DNA of 63,440 nucleotides, the filler included, from Klebsormidium nitens (lineage: Eukaryota > Plantae > Klebsormidiophyceae), in NCBI GenBank assembly GCA_000708835.1. It is 6 parts of 6 records of this genome, joined end to end, with 100 filler letters (N's around TTAATTAATTAA, not from the genome) between each part and the next. Parts side by side here need not be neighbours in the genome. Positions count along the whole stretch, not along the records: positions 1 to 9,242 come from DF237501.1; 5 more parts are not named here. One strand, 5' to 3'. Every line of letters starts with the position of its first letter. Positions within the stretch are counted from its first letter, which is position 1. The notes beneath the pieces were generated by a model. It saw only the letters and a program-made list of their open reading frames with translations, was not told where the DNA came from and did no database searches. Below, piece after piece: positions 1-12,300 of this stretch. The position numbers and the translations under genes are program-made.

Positions 1-772
1 CCGTACGAGCTTGCCCGTGCATCGCAGTCCTCGCAACGCCTCCTGCTACACCCCTCGCTCCCCCTCTACCTAACCCCAAACCCCCACGCTGTTGCTTCGG
101 CTGCGCCTCCATCACGTACTCTCCCGCTCCCAACCACCATACGTACTCACCTCCATCAGGATCGAACGACGGCGACAACCTCACAGGGTCGTCACTTGCG
201 CCCGGCTTCAAGATCAAAGTTCCAACCCAACCTTTGGGAAGGAAATGTGTAGTCAACTCTGCCTTGGAGACGATGCTGTAGCCTTCGGAGTTCACCAACG
301 AAATCAACGGCTCCTTGGTAATCGCGGCAGCATCGGGGAAAGCCACCAAAACCGCATTGGGGACCAAAACTTCATCAGGCGCCCCTAGCTCTTCGGTCAC
401 CCCCTGCTCCACTTCCTTTTCTCCCTTCTCTTTGTCCTCCCTTCCGCTGTTATCCCCTCTCATCGAAACCCCATCTCCCGTGTTACCCTTTGCAGCAACG
501 TTGGAAGTAGTTCCCCCTTCAGCTCCATTGCCAGTCCCTGGAGCCGGCTCTTTGGGATCGGCGGGCGGCACCTCCGTCTCCACGCCCTTCACATCCTTCT
601 GCTTAGCGTCTCCGAGCGTACCCACAGCACCCGTCGGTGCCGAATGCGCTCCATGATCTTTGGTCACGCGCGAGGCCCCGACAACCGCAGCTACCGTAGC
701 CACGGGAGCCGAATTCGCCGACCGATTCCTGCTTGCAGGTGGCCGGACTCCCAAAGGGGCCAATGATGCCAT
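1..772 (-). CDS. Hypothetical protein, 3'-partial (runs off the window start). Low-complexity charged N-half followed by a small globular domain.
   Basis: Manual translation gives an ORF from ATG at 772 (CAT 770-772, right after a ctgcag acceptor-like site) with no stop to position 1: MASLAPLGVRPPASRN...EDKEKGEKEVEQ...PLISLVNSEGYSIVSKAELTTHFLPKGWVGTLILKPGASDDPVRLSPSFDPDGGEYVWWLGAGEYVMEAQP. It is absent from the ORF track because it has no stop. Confidence 0.55.
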   Translation of the reverse strand, partial: MASLAPLGVRPPASRNRSANSAPVATVAAVVGASRVTKDHGAHSAPTGAVGTLGDAKQKDVKGVETEVPPADPKEPAPGTGNGAEGGTTSNVAAKGNTGDGVSMRGDNSGREDKEKGEKEVEQGVTEELGAPDEVLVPNAVLVAFPDAAAITKEPLISLVNSEGYSIVSKAELTTHFLPKGWVGTLILKPGASDDPVRLSPSFDPDGGEYVWWLGAGEYVMEAQPKQQRGGLGLGRGGARGVAGGVARTAMHGQART

Positions 773-1832
773 CTGCAGTATTGAAAAGAATTCCCTTTAC
801 GCCCCGGGTGTCACTCTTCATGGAAACGTCCTACTATACAAACAACAAAGCAACGGAGCACTCAGATGGATTAAAGACAGCGTCCTACCTTTGACGGTAA
901 TTTCTGAGCTAATCTTCTCTGCATAAATAATCTTAGACCCGACATGTTCCCCCGTGCAAGTAAACGGATTGCTACTGAGTCTAGTTCTATGTGTGCACGG
1001 AAACAACAGGAACAGATTCTAGAATGCTGGCAAAATCAATGATGAACTAGTGTACGATTGACATATATTTTAAATATGCTATGCTCCCAAGCGCCGGTAT
1101 GGAAAAGCAACGAGATACTTTTATTAGAATTCCCTAGAGCTAACTACCGAGTCTAGGTGGCCAGGGTCCAACGGCGAACAGTCACGGAACGGGTATGGTC
1201 ACAGATAAATACGCTATGCTACCGAGCCTCGGTACGGCGTGGCCCCGCAGGTTATCGAGCAGCTCCACCATCACTACAAGGTCTTCACATACCGAGCCTC
1301 GGTAGCAAAATATTTTACCGGCTCCGACAGCTAACCATTACCGATAACGGTTACCGAGCAACTAGAGGCGAGTGAAAAGGCGAGTGAGAAGAAACCATTA
1401 CCGGGACCATTACCGTAAGCTCATATTTCAAAAACAATGGGAAAAGTCTGTTTCTACCGAGCCTCGGTAGAAACCGACCACAAGGGACCGGCACAAAACA
1501 TAGCTACAATGTCAAAAAACGGGACGGGGTTGACCGTTACCGCTTACCGTTACCGCACGATATCGCCGTTTGCTTGCGCCCCTTATCCGTCCTCACAATG
1601 CCCCTTTACAATTAACTTGGATTATGACGGGACCACCCGGCGGCGTCGCTTGTGACAAAACCGCGGGGAATCTAAAAAGATTGACGGGACAAGGGTCTGA
1701 GTCTACATACGTGGTATGGACTATGATATTTGTAGAATCTTTAGGCTTCCTCCAATGTTGGCTCTCTCCCTGTGGGCGCGGCACAAATTACTGTAAATTA
1801 CAGTCCGATATGGAGCATTCTGATTGGTTGTT

Positions 1833-1885
1833 TGGATATGGGCATCCACCACGTTGGATATGGGCATCCAACCACGTTGGATATG
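1833..1885. repeat. Short 24-25 bp tandem repeat (ttggatatgggcatcca(a)ccacg), ~2.3 units
   Basis: Directly visible; each unit has an internal TGGAT...ATCCA inverted repeat. Confidence 0.7.
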
Positions 1886-2540
1886 AACCATAGGTTTGGA
1901 TTTAGTAATCATTGGACCATCCCCTAGATCCACCCATTCCCATTATCGTCAATCTGCGTGGCCAACCGATGGCCGTCCGATAGGGTCGGGTTATCCGGAT
2001 GACACGTCCTACGGCCCACAGAATCGCGATATTTATCGTTACACACGCATTTAACACTGCTCACATAACAAATACAGTCGGTCCTTCATGGATACCAGTG
2101 TAACGCTTTCCCCCGGCCGCATCGTTTCGCGCAATCAGACTGGAAAATGGGGTACGGTATAAGTAATGGTAGTGCCCGGTGGAAACGATGGCTACCGAGA
2201 TCTCGGTAGCATTTGCATTTGTAGCTTCATTTCTTTTTAGTGAGCGACGGAGCGGATTTTCTGGGGCGCCCAANNNNNNNNNNNNNNNNNNNNNNNNNNN
2301 NNNNNNNNNNNNNNNNNNNNNNNNNNNNNNNNNNNNNNNNNNNNNNNNNNNNNNNNNNNNNNNNNNNNNNNNNNNNNNNNNNNNNNNNNNNNNNNNNNNN
2401 NNNNNNNNNNNNNNNNNNNNNNNNNNNNNNNNNNNNNNNNNNNNNNNNNNNNNNNNNNNNNNNNNNNNNNNNNNNNNNNNNNNNNNNNNNNNNNNNNNNN
2501 NNNNNNNNNNNNNNNNNNNNNNNNNNNNNNNNNNNNNNNT

Positions 2541-2721
2541 CAAGGTGGTCCGTTGCTACCGAGGCTCGGCAGCTCACCCTTGTTTGAGTCACGCTGGTCC
2601 GTTGCTACCGAGGCTCGGCATCTCACCCTTGTTTGAGTCACGCTGGTCTGTTGCTTCCGAGCCTCGGCAGCTCACGCTTCTTTTAGTCACGCTGGTCCGT
2701 TGCTACCGAGCCTCGGTAGCA
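2541..2721. repeat. ~49-bp tandem repeat (about 4 units), each unit carrying one palindrome copy
   Basis: Unit cacgctggtccgttgctaccgaggctcggcagctcacccttgtttgagt is visibly repeated right after the N gap at 2274-2540, which probably hides more units. Confidence 0.85.
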
Positions 2722-3096
2722 TTGCCCCGTAGTAGCAGCAGCAGCCTGTTTCCTCAGGAAGCTACCGAGCCTCGGTAGCTTCTGCCGTTTCATGTGGACT
2801 ATCCTGGTACCTTATTCTTACGCTAGTCATTAGTAACCGAGGCTCGGTAGCAAACGATATCCCCATTTGTTACTTCTCCCGCGATCCTCCGTTGCTGCCG
2901 AGCCTTTGCAACAGCCGCAGGCAGATTCGCTGATAATGTACCGAGCCTCGTTAGCAAACGCTGTTTCCTACCTTGCCCGTACTTTGGCCAGTCGCCACCG
3001 AGCCTCGGTAGCTTTCCTCCGTTGCAGCTGCTGTTGGTGGTGTTTCGTTGAACTGAACCAAGTGATCCTTTGCTGCTCCCTGCAGACGACTCTCAG

Positions 3097-6000
3097 ATGA
3101 TCGGAAATCTTGGGAAAGCCGTCCATTCTAAAACGAGTGGGACGTGGGAGTGGGGCGAAAAGAACAGTCGTGACAGTAGGTCTGAGAGCACCGTCGAAAT
3201 GGGAGGGGCAAAGGGAGGGGCAAAGGGAGGGGCAAAGGGAGATGCAAAGGGAAAGGGTGGGCTTAAGAGGGTGGCAACCGCGGAGGCCGAGGGCAGTGGC
3301 AAGGCGGCTAAGAAGCAGAAGCCCGAGGCCGCTGGTGGGGCTGGACCAGTAGTGCCAAAATCCAAGAGGAGCGGTCCCGTGAAGAAGGGACGGGACGCCC
3401 GGTTCGACCGGTGGGGAGGAGGAGTTGACGGAAGTGCCGCCCGCGCATGTCAAGGTCACCACCCCGGGAAAGATGAAGGCGGGCGTAAGCACTCTGGGGA
3501 TTCGGGCTGCGCAGGGGGTCCTTTCGAAGCTGGAAAAGACCTACCTGCAGACCACCCTGCAGGATCAGATCAAAGATTTCGTCCCGGATGATCTGAGAAA
3601 GATCAAGCCTGATGGGATAGTGACCATCCCTATCGGGTATCTCTCGACCGAGGACGAGATGATCGGAGGGGAGCTGGTGTCCTTCAACCCGCGTCAGCTG
3701 AACGCAGAAGGAGTGGCGCGGATCCGGCAGAGGTTCCGTATCAATGGGTTCGACACGACGAGGTCCATTTTGACGGGGGTCGTGTCGGTGAGTAGGTTGG
3801 TTTTATTTGTAGAAGGAATAGTGGAATGGGAGGGTGATATTGTGATGGATATTTTGCAGGGCTTTGGTGATTATTGGCGACCATTGCTTGTAAGGAAAGA
3901 TGCACAAGTTGCAAGAGTTGTTGGATTGCTTGTGATTCGGATGACAACGCACCTTCAAATGGAATCAATCTGGCTCGTCATGGGGATCGAATATGTTCTT
4001 TGTCAACATTGCAGTACAATGGGAAGACCTTCCCGATGGACAAGAAAATGCGGGATACCTGGGACGAGGTGGAGAGAGAGAGCATCAAGGATTGGAAGGA
4101 GTATTTGGAGAAGACGAAGGAGACAAGCCCTCTGAGTGCGTGGACGCTGAAGCACATCGCAGGAGAGGGGAAGTCGTGGGGGAACAAAGTGAACGTGTCC
4201 GACGGCAAGCACAGGTGAGTATAGATTGGAGATGTTATGAGAGAGTACAATAGGAGTATGTCTGTCCAAACGGTGGCTCGTTCCTCATTTTATCTAGTTG
4301 CTACGGAGCCTTTGTAGGAATGCTGAGGAGAAGATTGGTGGGTTGTGTTGCTTCTGTGACTGGTGGTTTCAATAAAGCTGACAGGTTTTGTTGGGGATGA
4401 TGGACAGCTGTGCTTTGCTGATTGGCTGAACGGCACGCAAAGTGGCCCGTTGCTACCGAGCCTCGGTAGAATAGCACAGAGCAAGCAGAATGACGCCGTT
4501 GCTACCGAGCCTCGGTAGATTTGCGAAGAGGCGCGTTGCTACAGAGCCCTGGTAGGATAGTCCACAATGTTCTGAATACTTTATCTTGTGGTGTGGGATT
4601 CACAAATACTTTGCTNNNNNNNNNNNNNNNNNNNNNNNNNNNNNNNNNNNNNNNNNNNNNNNNNNNNNNNNNNNNNNNNNNNNNNNNNNNNNNNNNNNNN
4701 NNNNNNNNNNNNNNNNNNNNNNNNNNNNNNNNNNNNNNNNNNNNNNNNNNNNNNNNNNNNNNNNNNNNNNNNNNNNNNNNNNNNNNNNNNNNNNNNNNNN
4801 NNNNNNNNNNNNNNNNNNNNNNNNNNNNNNNNNNNNNNNNNNNNNNNNNNNNNNNNNNNNNNNNNNNNNNNNNNNNNNNNNNNNNNNNNNNNNNNNNNNN
4901 NNNNNNNNNNNNNNNNNNNNNNNNNNNNNNNNNNNNNNNNNNNNNNNNNNNNNNNNNNNNNNNNNNNNNNNNNNNNNNNNNNNNNNNNNNNNNNNNNNNN
5001 NNNNNNNNNNNNNNNNNNNNNNNNNNNNNNNNNNNNNNNNNNNNNNNNNNNNNNNNNNNNNNNNNNNNNNNNNNNNNNNNNNNNNNNNNNNNNNNNNNNN
5101 NNNNNNNNNNNNNNNNNNNNNNNNNCTTTCCCATTTTCAGGGTGGAAGCGGTGAGGGAGGAGCAAAAAGCGAACTTCCACTCCCTGAAGCTGGACCCCCA
5201 AGGCAAGAGGCACCCGATGGTGAAGGTGCAACTGCTGGACGCGTCATCGGACATGATGGGGAAGCTGCTGGCGTCCTGCAACGCAATCAACGAGCAAACC
5301 TCGCAGGGCATCCAGAAGCAGACCATCCCGCTCAAGATCATGACAGTCAGGAAGCTGTTGAGGAATCTCACGGCAGACCAAGTGGAAGAGCGGTTCCCGC
5401 CCAAGGTAAGAATATTAGGACAATACCAATGTAGAGACTCTGAAAGTGTTGCGCTGAATATGGGTCACAGGCAATATGCGTAGGTGTTGTTGCTGCCGCT
5501 GCCAGGATGCAGATTGCTGGATACATGGGGAGGCTACGAAGGAGTTGAAATTGAGCGAGGTACACATAAACTGGTCTCAAACGTTCTGCTAACATCGAAT
5601 ACGACATAATGCAGACGCTGGAGGCGATGTCGACAATGGCGGGCAACAAGCTGAGCCTGGAGTACGTTTACTACAAGCCCGTGGGGTCGGAGAAAGTGGA
5701 GAAGATCGCCAAGCTCCTGGTGGCCATGATGGTGGACCCCGTCTTCGAGTAAGTTTGCTTTTACTTTTGTGACGTTGATTCCGTGCTTGCTACCGAGGCT
5801 CGGTAGCAAGCAGGAAAGCTCTTCCAAACAGTTGACCATGGTTCATTCTACTTCTTCAATGAAGGCCACTTTAGACAAGAACTTGCTTGCTACCGAGCCT
5901 CGGTAGCGAGCAGATCTTTTAGACCATAGCAAAGCAAGTGTAGGGGCTCGTAGAAGGGATGATAGTCTTGGTTTCTCGATAGCTACCGATCCTCGGTAGC

Positions 6001-9000
6001 GGGACTCGTTATAAGGGGTATATAGTGCATCCAACCCTTCGTGACAGAGGGGATACGGATGTGGCACTCCGCTCCAGATCAGTCCGTTGTTACCGAGCCT
6101 CGGTAGGGTGCATCCAGACCAATAGTACTTTGCTACGGAGCATCGGCAGCATGCTGTATTTGAGAATCTCGTGGCGATCTGATAGAGAGATTTGGCAGTA
6201 ACTAATGTGATTTTGGTGCGCTTATAGGGACGACGTGGCGGGCTGGCAAAAGGCAGACAACCCCCCCGACTCCACGCCCTTCGCTTCGATGTGCAATGCG
6301 AAGCAGAGCGAGATGCGGAGGCTCTGCACGGCAGCCAACCACGCGGCGGGATCGGGGTACGAGAAGGCGCTAGAAGCCATCACCCAGGACACGGAGATTG
6401 CAGAGGGCTTGGGGAAGGAGGACCTGTACACGCTGGTGGGTACGGGCTTGAGTGAGGAATGGGTGGAGGAAGCGGTGTGGAGAATCTTTGTGAAGAAGCC
6501 GGCGCAAGCGGAAGAAGAGGGGTTCGGGAGGTCGTTGGAGAAGATACGGCAGATGTGCAAGGGGTTGGGGTACGCGTACGAGGTCATGGGGGAGGGGCTG
6601 CAGTGGCTGCGGAGGCTGAAGATCCTGAAGGATGAGCCGGTGTCGAAGGACGGGACCCCGGACATCTCGTGGAACTTCGCCTCAACGGATGCGAAGGCGT
6701 TGTTCCGGGTGAAGAAGTCGGTGGAGTACCCGGAATGGGTCATGAGGCTGGCGTTCAGCAAGACGAAGAAGGGGGCGCACTTGGCGCGGTACATGTTCGG
6801 GCAGGGGCAGGAGTGCAAGGAGAAGGCGAGCGCCAAGACAAAGAAGAGCAAGGACGTGGAGGAGGCGGGCAAGAGGTCGGTCTGCCAGTACCTACAGTGG
6901 CTATTCCCGCCGTCGGAGGGTTGGACGGACGCGCAGGGGCTGTACTCGGGGGTGCCGGAGGCGCTGGACCTGCGTAAGAACGTGCTAGAGGCGATCGCGA
7001 CTGGGGCTGTGTTTGGTGGAAAGTGGGAGGTTGAATCAGCACCGGCGACGGTGTACAATCTCGAGGACGAGAAGAAGCTCGGGGTGCCGTTAGAGAGGGA
7101 CTGTGGGGGGGAAGTTCCGGAGGGACTGATCGAGCTTGGGAAGGAAACGGGGCGGGAATACATCACGAGGAAGGTCGGGGCGTACAAATTGAACGTCCAG
7201 ATTGGAGTAGAGGACGTCGCGGAGGAGGGTCGGGAGGGAGAGGGGAGGCAAAGCCTGTCCATCAGCTCGACGGAGGTTTACAACGTGGTGGAGGAGTCAA
7301 ACTCCTTCGTTTTGCCGTCGGTAGCGAAGCTGGTGGAGGGATTGGAGTATCTGTGGCTGCTTGACGACGGAGACTGGGAGGAGAAGAAGAAGGGGGTGGA
7401 CCTGGTGTGGTTCAACGTGCCGCTGCCTCGGTGCGTGCTTACCGACCCGGAGGCGGCAAAGTATGACCCGCGGCAGCAGCGGCCGTGGGAGACGGACGAG
7501 GTGCTGGGGGCGCTGGAGCTAGCGAAGAAGCTCCTAACGCCTGCGGGGGTGCTGGTGGTGGTGGCACCTGTGGGGTTCCCGGAGTCGGCGTTGGAGGGGA
7601 CGAGTTACACTGGGATGGTCACCGCCGTGAGATCGACTGTTACGTTGGTGATGGATTTCAAGAAGTCGAAGGTGAGAAGGTCCTATAGTTGAATAATAGT
7701 TAGCCATTCATGTAGATCAATTGAGAGTTGGTTGTTTGTGGTTAACGCCAGAGGACAATTGAACACAACTTATTCCTAAAGTAGTGTGTCCTGCTGGTTT
7801 CCTACGGCATGGCAAAATAGGACTATTGGAAAGATAGCAATTGAACGTGCCTTCCGACTTGCTTGCAGGACACGACCAAGCACGTGTACGGCTGCCAGGG
7901 CAACACGTTCCACGTCTACTACGTGACGGTGGCGGCGTCGGACCTGACGTCCATGGTGAAGGGAAGTGCGTGGAGGGACACTCTTGAAGGGGTACCTTTC
8001 CACGGAATCTTGAAGAAGCACGGCTCGTACAAGGTACGGTCCCGTTTCTGCGTAATGCAAAGTTTGTCTTCCCTTTTGGTCTGAAAGTGTCATTGGCCTG
8101 AGAGTGTCTTGGGTTTTACGCTCATTTGTTCGAATCGTGAAGGAGTGACTGTTTTTGGAAAAGGCATGGAGGTGCGCACTCCAATTGCGGTCCTCCTACC
8201 GAGGCCCGGTAGGAAACGGAACTTGTGTAGTCCGTTTGATAGGGATCGTCATACAAGCTACCGAGGCTCGGTATAAACGGATCAGGGGAGAACAAATAGC
8301 GAGCTGGAAGGAGGCTCGATACTGAGGCATTGCTACCGAGACTCGGTAGCAATCTGCAAAGCATGTTGTTGCTCCTCTTTACTCGTCATTGCTACCGAGG
8401 CTCGGTAGTCCAGCCTCCTTGGACTGAGCTGTGAGTGATGTTGCATGTTATGCTTTAACGGGAAAGTTGATTATTTCCTCTCTGCCGTGTCATGTTCAGC
8501 CCTACTCTTTCCTTGAGTGGGAGGCCTCTGGCAAGGGGCTGTCGACCAAGATGGTGACGAGCCTGGTCGGGGGGGTGCCGCCGCGCGGTGGGACTGCCGT
8601 CGTGCTCAACGCCAAGGGGGGCAGGGAGGTGTCGGCCATCTCAAAGGCCGGCTTAAAAGTCCTCGCGACGTACTCCGAAGCCAAGGAGACGTTCCCTGGA
8701 TTGCTCGAGGATTCGAAGACCGGGAAGAAGTGGGGGGGTACCGACGGGTCAGCAGAAGAGCAGGTGGAGAAGGGGCCGACAGAAACGGCCCCGACGGAGA
8801 CGGCCGGAGCTGGACAGTTGAAGGGGAAGGAGAAGACCGCGGAGTATGCAGAGTCGGTAGCCGGAGACACCGGCAGGGATAAGTCTGCGGAGGATGAGGA
8901 TGAGGAGAGGGCCGAGATCGAGGACGAGCTTGCGGAGGCCGCGGCGGAGGGTGAGGAGGGCGAGTCGGAGCCTGCAGAGGGTGAGGAGGAGGAGGGCGGG

Positions 9001-9201
9001 GAGGAGCCTGCAGAGGGTGAGGAGGGGACAACAGAGGAGAAGGGCGAGGAGGGTGCGGGGGACAAGGAAGGGGAGAAGGCCGCGGGGACGGCACAGCTGA
9101 AGGCAGCTGGGGGCTCCGGAGAGGCAGGCGAGTCAATCGCCGGCAGCTCGGACCCCTACACTCTAGAATTGAAGCGTTTGGACGCTGAGAAGGGAGAGTA
9201 A
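3097..9201 (+). CDS. Multi-exon ParB/Srx-like domain protein fused to a degenerate beta-class (N6/N4) DNA methyltransferase-like domain, with Lys-rich N-terminus and acidic C-tail
   Basis: Exons with GT-AG borders: ~3097-3787 (one 1-nt frameshift near 3385-3390), 4015-4214, [gap 4616-5125], 5141-5405, 5506-5559, 5615-5748, 6228-7671, 7869-8033, 8500-9201. Phases match wherever no gap intervenes. ParB-like motifs: FNPRQLNAEGVARIRQRFRINGF and VNVSDGKHR. MTase-like motifs in beta order: VDLVWFNVPLP (motif IV, DPPY-like), ALELAKKLLTPAGVLVVV, and LSTKMVTSLVGGVPPRGGTAVVLNAKGGREVSAISKAGLKVLA (motifs X-I-II-like). The last exon may instead splice at GTAAGG near 9198. Confidence 0.7.
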
Positions 9202-9242
9202 GGTTGATTGTAGATAACACGGTTGTGGAGTCATTGGATAAA

Positions 9243-9342: not shown

Positions 9343-12300
9343 TGTAGGCCGCCGATGGCACTTGAAGGAAGCCGCCCTCTCCATAGCACTGGGGCTCGCG
9401 GACCTCCAGCTCGAACAGGAGCGAGTTGGCGACCCGCTTGAGCGCCGCCCCTCGCTGCTCCGCGTATTCCATCGCCGCCGCCTCCAGCTGCCCCATGAGC
9501 CTCAGCCTCTCGCCTTCGATTGTCCACAGATGCTCGGTAGCATCATGGAGGGCGGCCAGTGGCGATCGCGAGGACGGATCCGGCCGGTTTGCGCTCGGCT
9601 CAAAGCAGAGGAGGTTCGTGGCGTAGATGTCGCGCACGAGGGGGCGGAGCGTCGGTGGAAAGGCATACAGCCCCCCGGCAACGGGGTGGAGGCGCAAGAT
9701 GGCCGCCACCATGGGGCCGTCGTTGGAAAGGTACGCCAACCCGCGCTCGTCGAGAGGGCCCTCGAGCAACACGTGCCTCAGCAGCTTCAAGGTGACCACG
9801 TGCCCAAACACCCACGAGTAGCGAGGGATGAGCAGGGCGTGGAGCAAGGCTCCGTACGGCTGGAAGTGCGTCGGGCACCAGCCGGTCGCTCCCACGGGCC
9901 CGTCCTTGAGGAACCCTTGCATCCACGGCCGCCGCGGAACTGCCTTGCAAATCGCACATGTGGCAGGGTCGCCACAAGCTCCCGACTCGATCACGAGGTC
10001 GATCAGAGCGCCCACGTTTGCCGGAAGCCTCTCCCGCATTACGACGAACTCCTCTGGCTTCAGAGGCGCGTTGCTCCCTTGCGCTGGAGCCTTGCGAAAG
10101 TTGCACCACCTCAGCGCAAGAGCTCGCACCGCTGGTCTAAGCTCCGACAGCCCGTTCCTATACTTCCAGGGGCAATCGATTCCCTCCAAGGGCACATCCG
10201 AAGGTCGTACTCCGCCCACGCTCAGAGGAGTAAAGCCCCCAGCAACCCTCGGCGCTTTTGGGTCCGGTTCGCAGATGCTGTGCAAGGACGCTTCAGTGCC
10301 GGAGTCTCGCATCGCGCTCGAGTTGGCAAAGAAGGTCCCATCGAAGGTGATGACCTTGTCCCGCCCAAAAGCGTACGTAGCCAGCTCAGAGCTCGGCCCC
10401 TCCGTTCGCTCTGGCCTCAGGGGGTTGCCAACCATTCGGGCCTCCGCCTCAGCCGCTTCCACCTCGCCCGTGTAGAGGTGCGCGCAATCGACGCGCGAGC
10501 ACACGTGACGGATCTGAGACCGTGCCGCCAGGTCGTTGAAGGCCTGCATCGCCGAGTCAAACACCCGGTCGTCCAGCCTAGGAACGTTCGGCCCCTCGAG
10601 ACACCTCGTCGCCATGTCCCCCGCCTCAAAGTTGAGGCTATGGGCCGCCCCCAGGGCCGCCGCAAAGTGATTGCGCAAGAGGAGGCCGTGCGAGATGAGG
10701 TTGGTGCCGGAAAAGTTGAAGATACCGTCCTCCTGCAAAGAGAAAGGGCAGTAACCTCAGTTGCGCGTACAAAGTACATCGAATTCTTTGTACTATTCTG
10801 TCATGGGCTTCGAACGACAAATTCGCGCTTGCTTTGAGCGTGGTCGGTGAGAATGGCTTGCTCGGTCTTTCGGACTTGGCAGCTTCAGCATGTACCTGCA
10901 AAGATGCACAGGCGGCTATCGGAACGATGATGCATGAGTTTCCCGTTCCACGCGGCGTCGCACCCGGTCCGCTACATTTTGAGACCGTTTGGCCCCAAGA
11001 GTGTTGCACAATATGCAACAATGCTTGGACCGAACTTCGATGGCCCATGGAACCGCATAAGGGCTTGCCAATCTGCTTAAGTTGTGTAAACTTTGGAATG
11101 CACCGCGCGCTCGACTGCTTGACCACAGCAGAGGCCAGAAGAAAGTATCAAATCAAGGACATTTCTTCACTTCAATGGGCTCCTCATCCTTTGGGTTTCG
11201 TAAGGACCCGCTTCTATCGAGAGTCGGACCTGCGAGTGCTAGCTGTTCAAGAGCGAGGAGGTCCAATGGGCTTCAATAGTGCTCTGGAAGATCGACGAGC
11301 AAAAGCCATCAAGGAACGAAGAGAGAGGCTTGTCAAACATTACCATGACCTAGCAGAGCTCGGAAGATGCTTCCAGACGCAAGCCGTTCTGGCCGGTCTC
11401 AATCCAACTGAATGCATGGACCTCAGATTAAAACGCGAAAACCGTGAACAAGAGTTGGAGCGCATCTTTCGCGAGGAGGCAATCCAACAATAATCAATCC
11501 TTCGTTGCCTAGTACCGTTGGAGCCTCAACAAGGATTCTGGACCGAAGCAGACTTTTCGCCCATCGTCAAAGCCAAGTACATATTTGACTATCTCAGTAA
11601 TAATGCGTTGCTACCTTCAGAAGCAGCATACCAACAATACAAGAGGTGCGCACAGAGTCGATGGAGAAATATGTACGGCGATGAAGGAGTTTGGACGCAC
11701 CTGGCCGTCGTAGGCTACTGAGCAGCATGCCGCCTCGCGTCCGGGAGCGATGCGGCAGACACGCCGGTAGGTGGTGATAGGAAAGCGCGCCCTCGCCGTT
11801 GTCAGAGACGCCTTCCTGCTCTCCAGCTGCCATGGACGGCCGCATGGAGAGAGCAACTCGGCGGGCCGTGGAGCGCAAAAGTGCTTTGCTTTGTCCCGCC
11901 GTCGCACGCCCTCCTCGCCCCACCGTTCACAAAGGCTCGCGACACTCTCTCCGCCCCGGCTCATGACCGTGTCAATCTTCCGGTGGCTGTGGCCCATGTC
12001 GAGCGCCGCCGCCAAGAGACACTCCCAAGGCTCGAGGGTCTTTTGGTGGGTGCACGCAACTCTCGAGTCAGGTCGCCGGCACGCGGGGTCGTTGCAAACC
12101 AAGAGCCTCCTCGACTCCGCTTCACGCTCCAGAATCCTCTCTGCCCGCCTCTCAGCGAGGGTTCGCGTAGCCTCGCTCCCGCCTCCATCAATTGCGCGCT
12201 CAATCAGGGGCAAGGTTTGCTTTGAGAGCATCTCCAGAAGGTGCCGGCACCGCTCTAAACCCGTGCAGTCGACGCCGCTGCAATGCGCATTCTCTCCCCA

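Follow-up and report, generated by a model that had tools for sequence, protein, structure and literature searches.

Private palindromes in a two-gene mobile element of Klebsormidium nitens may be binding sites for an element-encoded protein

Why is one spliced gene of Klebsormidium nitens surrounded and interrupted by a dense set of short palindromes, and which protein might read them? This question is raised by a stretch of DNA of 63,440 nucleotides (assembly GCA_000708835.1), hereafter called the window, in which the part derived from DF237501.1 (positions 1 to 9,242) carries both the gene and the palindromes. The original prediction, made from the sequence alone, described the gene as encoding a ParB-fold protein and proposed that this protein recognizes the palindromes of its own mobile or extrachromosomal element. 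Our analysis shows that the gene, referred to here as the accessory gene, forms a conserved unit with a divergent partner gene, and that this unit is best explained as a multi-copy mobile element. We propose that the palindromes are sites in duplex DNA for a dimer of the element's own protein, most likely the accessory protein; this is the explanation we favour, and we hold belief and doubt in it to be about evenly balanced.

A repeat search of the window grouped 25 copies of the palindrome GCTACCGAG-N-CTCGGTAGC, and a 26th copy, at 2192-2211, has a centre of 2 nt (AT). The pattern GCTACCGAGNCTCGGTAGC gave 19 matches at two or fewer mismatches, compared with 0.00 expected from 200 dinucleotide-preserving shuffles. 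All copies in the window are non-coding: they occupy the region upstream of the seven-exon gene and its introns 2, 4 and 6, and none lies in an exon or in introns 1, 3 and 5. The predicted number of about 25 copies, their location upstream and in three introns, and their absence from exons were all confirmed. Four distal intergenic copies lie at 1143-1473, and a proximal intergenic array spans 2546-3014; the array includes a 49-bp tandem repeat of 3.6 units (2546-2720), with a palindrome in each unit, and five to six further copies beyond the repeat, up to 3012. Intron 2 contains palindromes at 4300-4558 (intact at 4452 and 4501, decayed at 4300 and 4538), intron 4 an array of five at 5789-6152 with a spacing of about 100 nt, and intron 6 an array of four at 8195-8411. 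Many copies are longer than the basic unit, reaching 23-31 nt (TTGC...GCAA, TCCGTT...AACGGA). The information profile of the sites revealed strongly conserved arms, a weaker centre and unconserved flanks. The arms and flanks behave as predicted, but the centre, which had been described as variable, is constrained: 20 of 22 window sites have C or G there, which amounts to a single C:G pair that can face either way.

Two further kinds of short repeat were noticed in the intergenic region. At least seven isolated copies of the half-site (A/G/C)TTACCG cluster at 1330-1560, beside the distal palindromes. At 1832-1885, a 22-nt tandem repeat of 2.4 units (TTGGATATGGGCATCCAACCACG) carries another small inverted repeat, TGGAT..ATCCA, which is possibly a second kind of site.

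Homologous loci were retrieved by exact protein look-up from Logan runs, ENA assemblies, GCA_965192845.1 and JGI samples 3300060284/5. Every one of the ten further loci found (28-85% protein identity) has related palindrome arrays, which occupy the upstream region as well as intron 2, 3 or 4 and intron 5 or 6 of the gene. The palindromes themselves differ by locus. The window shares type A, TTGCTACCGAG-n-CTCGGTAGCAA, with L012, L017, L022 and L023; type B, TACCGAC-n-GTCGGTA with A/T at the centre, occurs in L011 and L015; type C, T(T)TGCCGAC-n-GTCGGCA(A)A, in L016, L013/L014 and L020; and type D, TACCGCA-n-TGCGGTA, in L018 and L019. L021 carries types C and E, written together as GCTTGCCGA[C/T]-n-[G/A]TCGGCAAGC. 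By type, the arms read TACCGAG, TACCGAC, TACCGCA, TGCCGAC and TGCCGAT. Across all types CCG-N5-CGG is invariant, and differences between types are always mirrored in both arms, including the innermost arm position, which is found in G/C, C/G, A/T and T/A states. In a tree of exon 5 the TACCG types form one clade and the TGCCG types the other, so that palindrome type tracks the gene tree.

The sites are also exclusive to the element. Under a strict site definition, the 84 kb of element DNA contain 118 sites and the 48 kb of host DNA that flank the element on these contigs contain none; among the genes of the site-free flanks are a multi-intron CCT gene and genes for histone H2A and NB-ARC. A palindrome scan of a metagenome collection returned only 10 isolated single matches, which we take as chance, and a scan of viral contigs returned none. 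The palindrome is tied to this gene family, as the original prediction had held. The alternative named there, an unrelated mini-hairpin that colonized non-coding DNA, is rejected by the presence of a co-varying version at every homologous locus and its absence from the flanking host genes. L021 has two subtypes within one element, CCGAC-n-GTCGG upstream and after exon 5 (4775-4865, 10926) and CCGAT-n-ATCGG in intron 4 (7603-8821); this mixture may be a specificity shift caught midway.

Comparison with L012, an 84%-identical copy, demonstrated that the sites are constrained. In introns 4 and 6, palindrome columns are 91% identical between the two copies, versus 59% elsewhere (Fisher p = 2.6e-13). 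The introns are otherwise saturated (49-63% identity), and the palindromes of introns 4 and 6 align as islands; those of intron 4 hold their position despite the diverged sequence between sites. The arrays are also in turnover. The intron 2 sites that are intact in the window are decayed in L012, intron 3 of L012 has a 200-nt insertion carrying two sites, and unit-sized polymorphisms of the arrays were seen in runs X1 and X6. In another allele or copy represented in these two runs, the 71 nt between two intron 4 palindromes (5808-5880) are replaced by 16 other letters, and about 40 nt between intron 2 sites are missing in run X6.

The accessory gene and its partner gene are a conserved divergent pair. 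In the window, the first exon part of the partner gene lies on the minus strand at 2-772; its open reading frame starts at ATG 772-770, contains no stop and leaves the window at the left end. It is homologous to the divergent genes in the same position of L015, L016 and L021 (tblastx) and of L022 and L023; the L023 protein exceeds 1,250 residues, with a first exon of 691 aa. Sites are also present in the partner-gene intron of L023, and the shared promoter region of L022 has about 15 sites, nine of them within a 59-60-bp tandem array. Multiple dispersed copies exist, with at least seven loci with differing neighbours in two sister metagenomes and at least two diverged copies in run X1. Some copies are defective, namely L015 and L020, which are interrupted by in-frame stops, and the truncated L019. 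Homology between L013 and L016 (about 82% identity) breaks off sharply at position 12328 of L016, past which the two loci are unrelated. The best explanation is that the window contains most of one copy of a two-gene, multi-copy element of about 10-12 kb. The prediction of a mobile element is supported by these dispersed copies, by the pseudogenes among them and by the transposase-like partner.

The partner protein is an orphan that probably acts as a Mutator/hAT-like DDE transposase and carries a putative WRKY-like zinc finger. Inspection of its relatives by eye picked out, in order, a WxCxxC...HNH block, the invariant D of VYxDGCH, another D (MMD) 76 residues later and CxxH 30 residues further on. 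The transposase of Muta1, a Mutator-like element (MULE), has D214, D283 and H307 and an N-terminal zinc finger (PMC5225508), and we consider the partner a Mutator/hAT-like lead because the order and spacing of its motifs agree with those of Muta1. Searches of 16 family members and of long exons against Pfam, and of the protein against the PDB, gave zero matches, the MULE and Transposase_mut profiles included. Only 24 relatives were found in 5.8 billion sequences, and a search of viral and prokaryotic collections with the partner-gene alignment found none.

Two observations concern the distribution of the element. The truncated copy L019 (8342-9088; 12850-14372) lies near a Replitron_HUH (PF21859) open reading frame and a TIR-NB-ARC-TPR gene. 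Near-identical parts of the locus are present in 20 runs (X1-X20) from 13 studies, under 11 organism labels and one 'plant metagenome', which points either to a microbe or cobiont of wide distribution or to several closely related species.

The exons of the accessory gene all lie on the plus strand. The conserved part of exon 1 spans 3425-3787 in frame 2 and contains the motifs DGIVxIPIGYL ... FNPRQLNAEGV.RIRQRF.INGFD ... ILTGV, by which it may, on a tentative reading, encode the first half of a ParB/DndB-like domain. An extra G near 3390-3393, seen relative to L012 and to the 97%-identical P0030, puts this part in a different frame from an upstream ATG at 3097 (frame 1). The contig of run X1, possibly the source data of the window, matches the window letters at 3390-3393. 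The conserved part does share its frame with an internal ATG at 3473, from which the window copy may be translated; alternatively, this copy may have been recently broken. Exon 2 (4015-4214) ends in the conserved DG[KRL][HQ]R, with intron 2 splitting the R codon; exons 3 (5141-5405) and 4 (5615-5748) are followed by the large exon 5 (6228-7671; 481 codons) and exon 6 (7869-8033). Exon 7 (8500-9201) encodes VVLNAKGG, a possible remnant of the AdoMet (S-adenosylmethionine) loop, and then a long acidic low-complexity tail up to the stop codon; database profile searches and an Atlas feature search with this exon yielded no usable match. Coding tandem repeats are present at both ends of the protein, at 3201-3252 (12-nt unit, (GAKG)n) and at 8919-9025 (15-36-nt units, in the acidic E/G-rich tail), and the window differs from L012 in their unit number.

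An identical seven-exon layout was found by tblastn in L011, L012, L015, L016, L020 and L021. Between the exons of the window and L012 (2565 nt), synonymous divergence (dS) is 0.46 and the ratio of nonsynonymous to synonymous divergence (dN/dS) is 0.20, and this ratio points to purifying selection on the accessory protein. From the conserved exon structure, the GT-AG borders and dN/dS we conclude that the accessory gene is real and spliced, in agreement with the predicted spliced gene.

Two assembly gaps interrupt the locus. The 510 N at 4616-5125, inside intron 2, are spurious and conceal no exon, because contigs from runs X1, X5 and X6 join the two sides, connecting 4615 to 5126/5129 with 0-3 letters between, so that the true length is about 0-3 nt. 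The gap at 2274-2539 lies within the intergenic palindrome array, is non-coding and is crossed by zero reading frames; the distance between the anchors around it is close to that in L022 (1418 nt in one, 1453 nt in the other).

What kind of protein does the accessory gene encode? Profile and structure searches were done per exon, with the window and its homologues, and the candidate ParB-like domain is spread over exons 1-3. No exon of any homologue matched a Pfam, NCBIfam, PADLOC, PHROGs or PDB profile in this exon-by-exon search, which has low sensitivity. When 1.84 billion representatives were scanned with exon 5 by HMMER, only 26 proteins were recovered, all of them exon-sized open reading frame fragments from unannotated assemblies. 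The accessory protein belongs to a narrow orphan family. In six homologues DGKHR, DGRHR or DGLQR is conserved where exons 2 and 3 meet, which fits the ParB/Srx motif DGxHR. A language-model comparison of exon 1 returned look-alikes from DndB-clan clusters only, with scores of 0.88-0.89 that lie under the tool's trust level of 0.9, and an AlphaFold model of exon 1 alone (9-row alignment) was unusable, with a predicted local distance difference test (pLDDT) of 47.8. What speaks for the predicted ParB/Srx fold is the motif together with the sub-threshold look-alikes, and we put forward a ParB/Srx (DndB-like) N-terminal domain only tentatively.

The AlphaFold model of exon 5 reached a pLDDT of 73.8. 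Residues 1-330 are confidently modelled and all-helical, and Foldseek comparison of the model with the PDB gave zero matches below E 0.1, leaving this helical part unmatched. Residues 376-481 align weakly with methyltransferase halves in VIA-align (Z 3.3-5.5; aTrm11 5.5, M.MboIIA 3.7) and with an Atlas N6_N4_Mtase cluster, with a template-modelling (TM) score of 0.47. They would form the beginning of a methyltransferase-like beta-alpha-beta domain whose remainder is encoded by exons 6-7. The beta-class N6/N4 motif IV, (D/N/S)PP(Y/F/W), is not present: in the DPPY position the family consensus is G[VA][ED]LVW[LF]-[NQT]-[VLM]-P-[LF]-P (VDLVWFNVPLP in the window), with the first proline and the aromatic residue lost. 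The models hint at a C-terminus that resembles a degenerate methyltransferase in permuted order, in which motif IV precedes motif I. The domain order, to be taken tentatively, would be a ParB/DndB-like domain, a helical domain, a degenerate permuted methyltransferase-like domain and the acidic tail.

How might the palindromes act? We suggest that the sites, T[A/G]CCG-NN-N-NN-CGG[T/C]A over 15-23 bp, are cis-acting and two-fold symmetric in duplex DNA, and that they would be bound by a dimer of an element-encoded protein, the candidate being the accessory protein, whose gene they saturate. The sites would tag the non-coding DNA of the element, namely the shared promoter region and the introns, so that the protein acts on its own copies only. 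It would probably act in autoregulation or shield the element from host silencing, much as VANC does on behalf of VANDAL elements. The arrays would expand and contract via tandem duplication, and the specificities of site and protein would drift jointly, giving each element lineage its own palindrome. The comparisons establish that palindromes and gene go together, that the sites are exclusive, constrained and symmetrically co-varying, and that the two genes form a unit; which protein binds and to what effect is our inference. Dimer sites in duplex DNA are favoured because the sites are constrained, element-private, two-fold symmetric and internal, lying in the intergenic region and introns and not at the element ends, and because the hairpin reading, discussed below, is weakened. 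A more far-reaching version seems rather unlikely to us: a eukaryotic transposon would have taken up a protein of the ParB/DndB superfamily that is joined to a DNA-methyltransferase fold, possibly an inactive one. The dimer of this protein would read the long perfect palindromes in the introns and promoter of the element and from there spread on or mark chromatin, as a self-directed nuclear counterpart of bacterial ParB-parS whose rapidly diversifying specificities prevent cross-talk between lineages.

The main rival is that the palindromes are sites of the partner transposase, recognized by its WRKY-like zinc finger for the activation of cognate copies or for a transposition complex; we consider this unlikely. 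The two genes are always linked, with the palindrome-filled promoter region between them in common, and the partner protein contains, by eye, a zinc-finger-like block. In addition, Mutator transposases bind repeated subterminal motifs, and the AtMu1 transposase activates cognate copies sequence-specifically (PMC5225508; bioRxiv 10.64898/2026.08.24.746577). However, the sites described here are not terminal, the last site of L016 being about 1.6 kb from the sharp right boundary, and their density is highest in the introns of the accessory gene. Moreover, L020 keeps 16 sites, and no partner gene is seen within 3 kb upstream. WRKY-type fingers usually bind short asymmetric sites as monomers, which also argues against the partner as reader. 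The palindromes could instead act as structures, that is, as hairpins in pre-mRNA or single-stranded DNA that serve as small-RNA precursors, modulators of splicing or back-splicing, or replication or recombination signals. Folding predictions for the extended copies give hairpins of very high stability (-9 to -15 kcal/mol, z -5.7 to -8.2), self-complementary arrays flank the large exon 5 in all loci, and the arm changes are all compensatory; even so, we judge this improbable. The innermost arm bases are unable to pair in a hairpin whose centre is 1 nt long; they nevertheless stay symmetric through four states, and therefore two-fold recognition of duplex DNA fits better than hairpin stability. 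The sense strand has no excess of G:U-compatible variants (22, against 36 antisense and 47 other variants), half of the sites lie in untranscribed or promoter DNA between the divergent genes, the stems of type B are weak (-4.5 kcal/mol), and an Rfam search of the window found zero matches.

A true ParB/parS-type partition system or DNA clamp is in our view highly improbable; here the palindrome clusters would be loading sites from which a CTP-dependent ParB-like protein spreads, in order to segregate an extrachromosomal element or to form loops. Clustered palindromes of about 16-23 bp do lie beside and inside a gene with a ParB-superfamily-like N-terminus, and the lineage-specific site variants are reminiscent of incompatibility groups. 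On the other hand, no ParA-like gene was found, the only conserved neighbour being the transposase-like gene; ParB profiles gave zero matches and no helix-turn-helix (HTH) was recognizable; the accessory gene has spliceosomal introns and a methyltransferase-like C-terminus; and copies are integrated among nuclear genes, with CCT, histone H2A and NB-ARC neighbours. The predicted segregation or extrachromosomal system of ParABS type is not supported, given the missing ParA, the chromosomal copies and look-alikes that are DndB and not chromosomal ParB. Scant credence is also due to the idea that the palindromes are functionless, as tandem-repeat debris or a miniature hairpin transposon. The arrays do gain and lose units, as seen in the 49-bp and 59-60-bp repeats, the two-site indel in L012 intron 3 and the polymorphisms of runs X1 and X6. 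However, sites persist in homologues down to about 30% identity, whereas introns are already saturated at dS 0.46; no sites were seen in neighbouring genes, arms but not flanks are conserved, and the metagenome-wide matches are isolated and single. This explanation is already largely refuted.

Several points weigh against our preferred reading, in which a dimer of an element-encoded protein binds the palindromes. Profile searches recognized no DNA-binding domain in the accessory or the partner protein. The ParB/DndB and methyltransferase assignments are based on sub-threshold scores, and the transposase assignment on motifs read by eye, with zero Pfam matches. No terminal inverted repeats were found in L016 when the right boundary was compared with the left 1 kb, where the left end is possibly off the contig. 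Pseudogene copies with in-frame stops keep their sites (27 in L015, with stops at 9527-10957, and 16 in L020, with stops at 6114-6350), and therefore site maintenance needs no intact linked gene; such upkeep is what one would expect of a protein supplied in trans by other copies. Furthermore, linkage and descent alone would also give co-variation of site and gene, whichever protein reads the sites.

The closest known analogue appears to be the VANDAL/VANC system. VANC21, encoded by the Mutator-like element VANDAL21 (Hiun) of Arabidopsis, binds motifs concentrated in the intron, intergenic and terminal non-coding DNA of its own element (PMC5735166). These motifs are dynamic tandem repeats in the VANC and VANB introns and upstream of VANA, and they differ between related elements (PMC5735166). 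The element described here likewise combines a transposase gene, in this case a probable one, with an accessory gene encoding an orphan protein, and it has element-specific arrays of short motifs in its own non-coding DNA, with tandem-repeat turnover and motifs that differ among related elements. In contrast, the VANC motif YAGTATTAY is asymmetric and 9 nt long, whereas the sites here are perfect palindromes of 15-23 bp. VANC contains DUF1985/DUF287, whereas the accessory protein has no Pfam match and would be ParB/DndB-like and methyltransferase-like. Binding and hypomethylation have been shown for VANC, whereas for the palindromes described here binding is a proposal.

Similarities to other systems are more partial. 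As in ParB-parS, Noc-NBS and DndB (DGQHR subgroup), palindromes of similar size cluster near a gene with a DGxHR motif, and variant sites pair with variant proteins; DndB is a DNA-binding autoregulator. Unlike these systems, the accessory protein has no detected profile match or HTH and no ParA was detected, its gene is nuclear, spliced and part of an integrated element, and it has an extra helical domain of about 330 residues and a methyltransferase-like C-terminus. Own short palindrome classes flank the gene of each REP/RAYT (REPIN) family in bacteria, and the pairing of a gene family with its own palindrome class is similar here; however, REPs occur genome-wide by hundreds, whereas our sites lie within the element, and RAYT is a Y1 HUH transposase, a domain not present here. 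ParB-like domains fused to an N6/N4 methyltransferase (PF01555) are known from phages and bacteria, and eukaryotic methyltransferases derive from phage ParB-associated loci (Iyer et al. 2016, PMC4738411). The accessory protein resembles such fusions in the order of a ParB-like domain and a permuted (motif IV before motif I) methyltransferase-like fold, but it has a degenerate [NQT]-[VLM]-P-[LF] in place of D/N/S-P-P-Y/F/W, lacks a PF01555 sequence match and reaches a structural Z of only 3.7-5.5. The eukaryotic ParB-linked methyltransferase clades described so far have a ParB-type HTH or an FHA domain, unlike the architecture proposed here (PMC4738411).

Taken together, the protein family, the class of palindromic sites and the host lineage are new, and the principle is known from VANDAL/VANC; the palindrome strings had no match in the searchable literature. 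To our knowledge, the principle that a transposon labels itself has so far rested essentially on VANDAL/VANC in Arabidopsis. If the element's own protein reads the palindromes, this would be a second, independently evolved transposon that labels its own non-coding DNA with private sites, and it would do so with a chemistry that differs from that of VANC, through long two-fold symmetric sites and a ParB/DndB-like and methyltransferase-like candidate reader. The five natural site variants, together with their diverged proteins, constitute a ready-made specificity series for protein-DNA co-evolution and a possible source of orthogonal DNA-targeting modules for eukaryotic cells. If true, the accessory protein would be a rare case of a ParB-superfamily DNA-binding protein at work in the eukaryotic nucleus.

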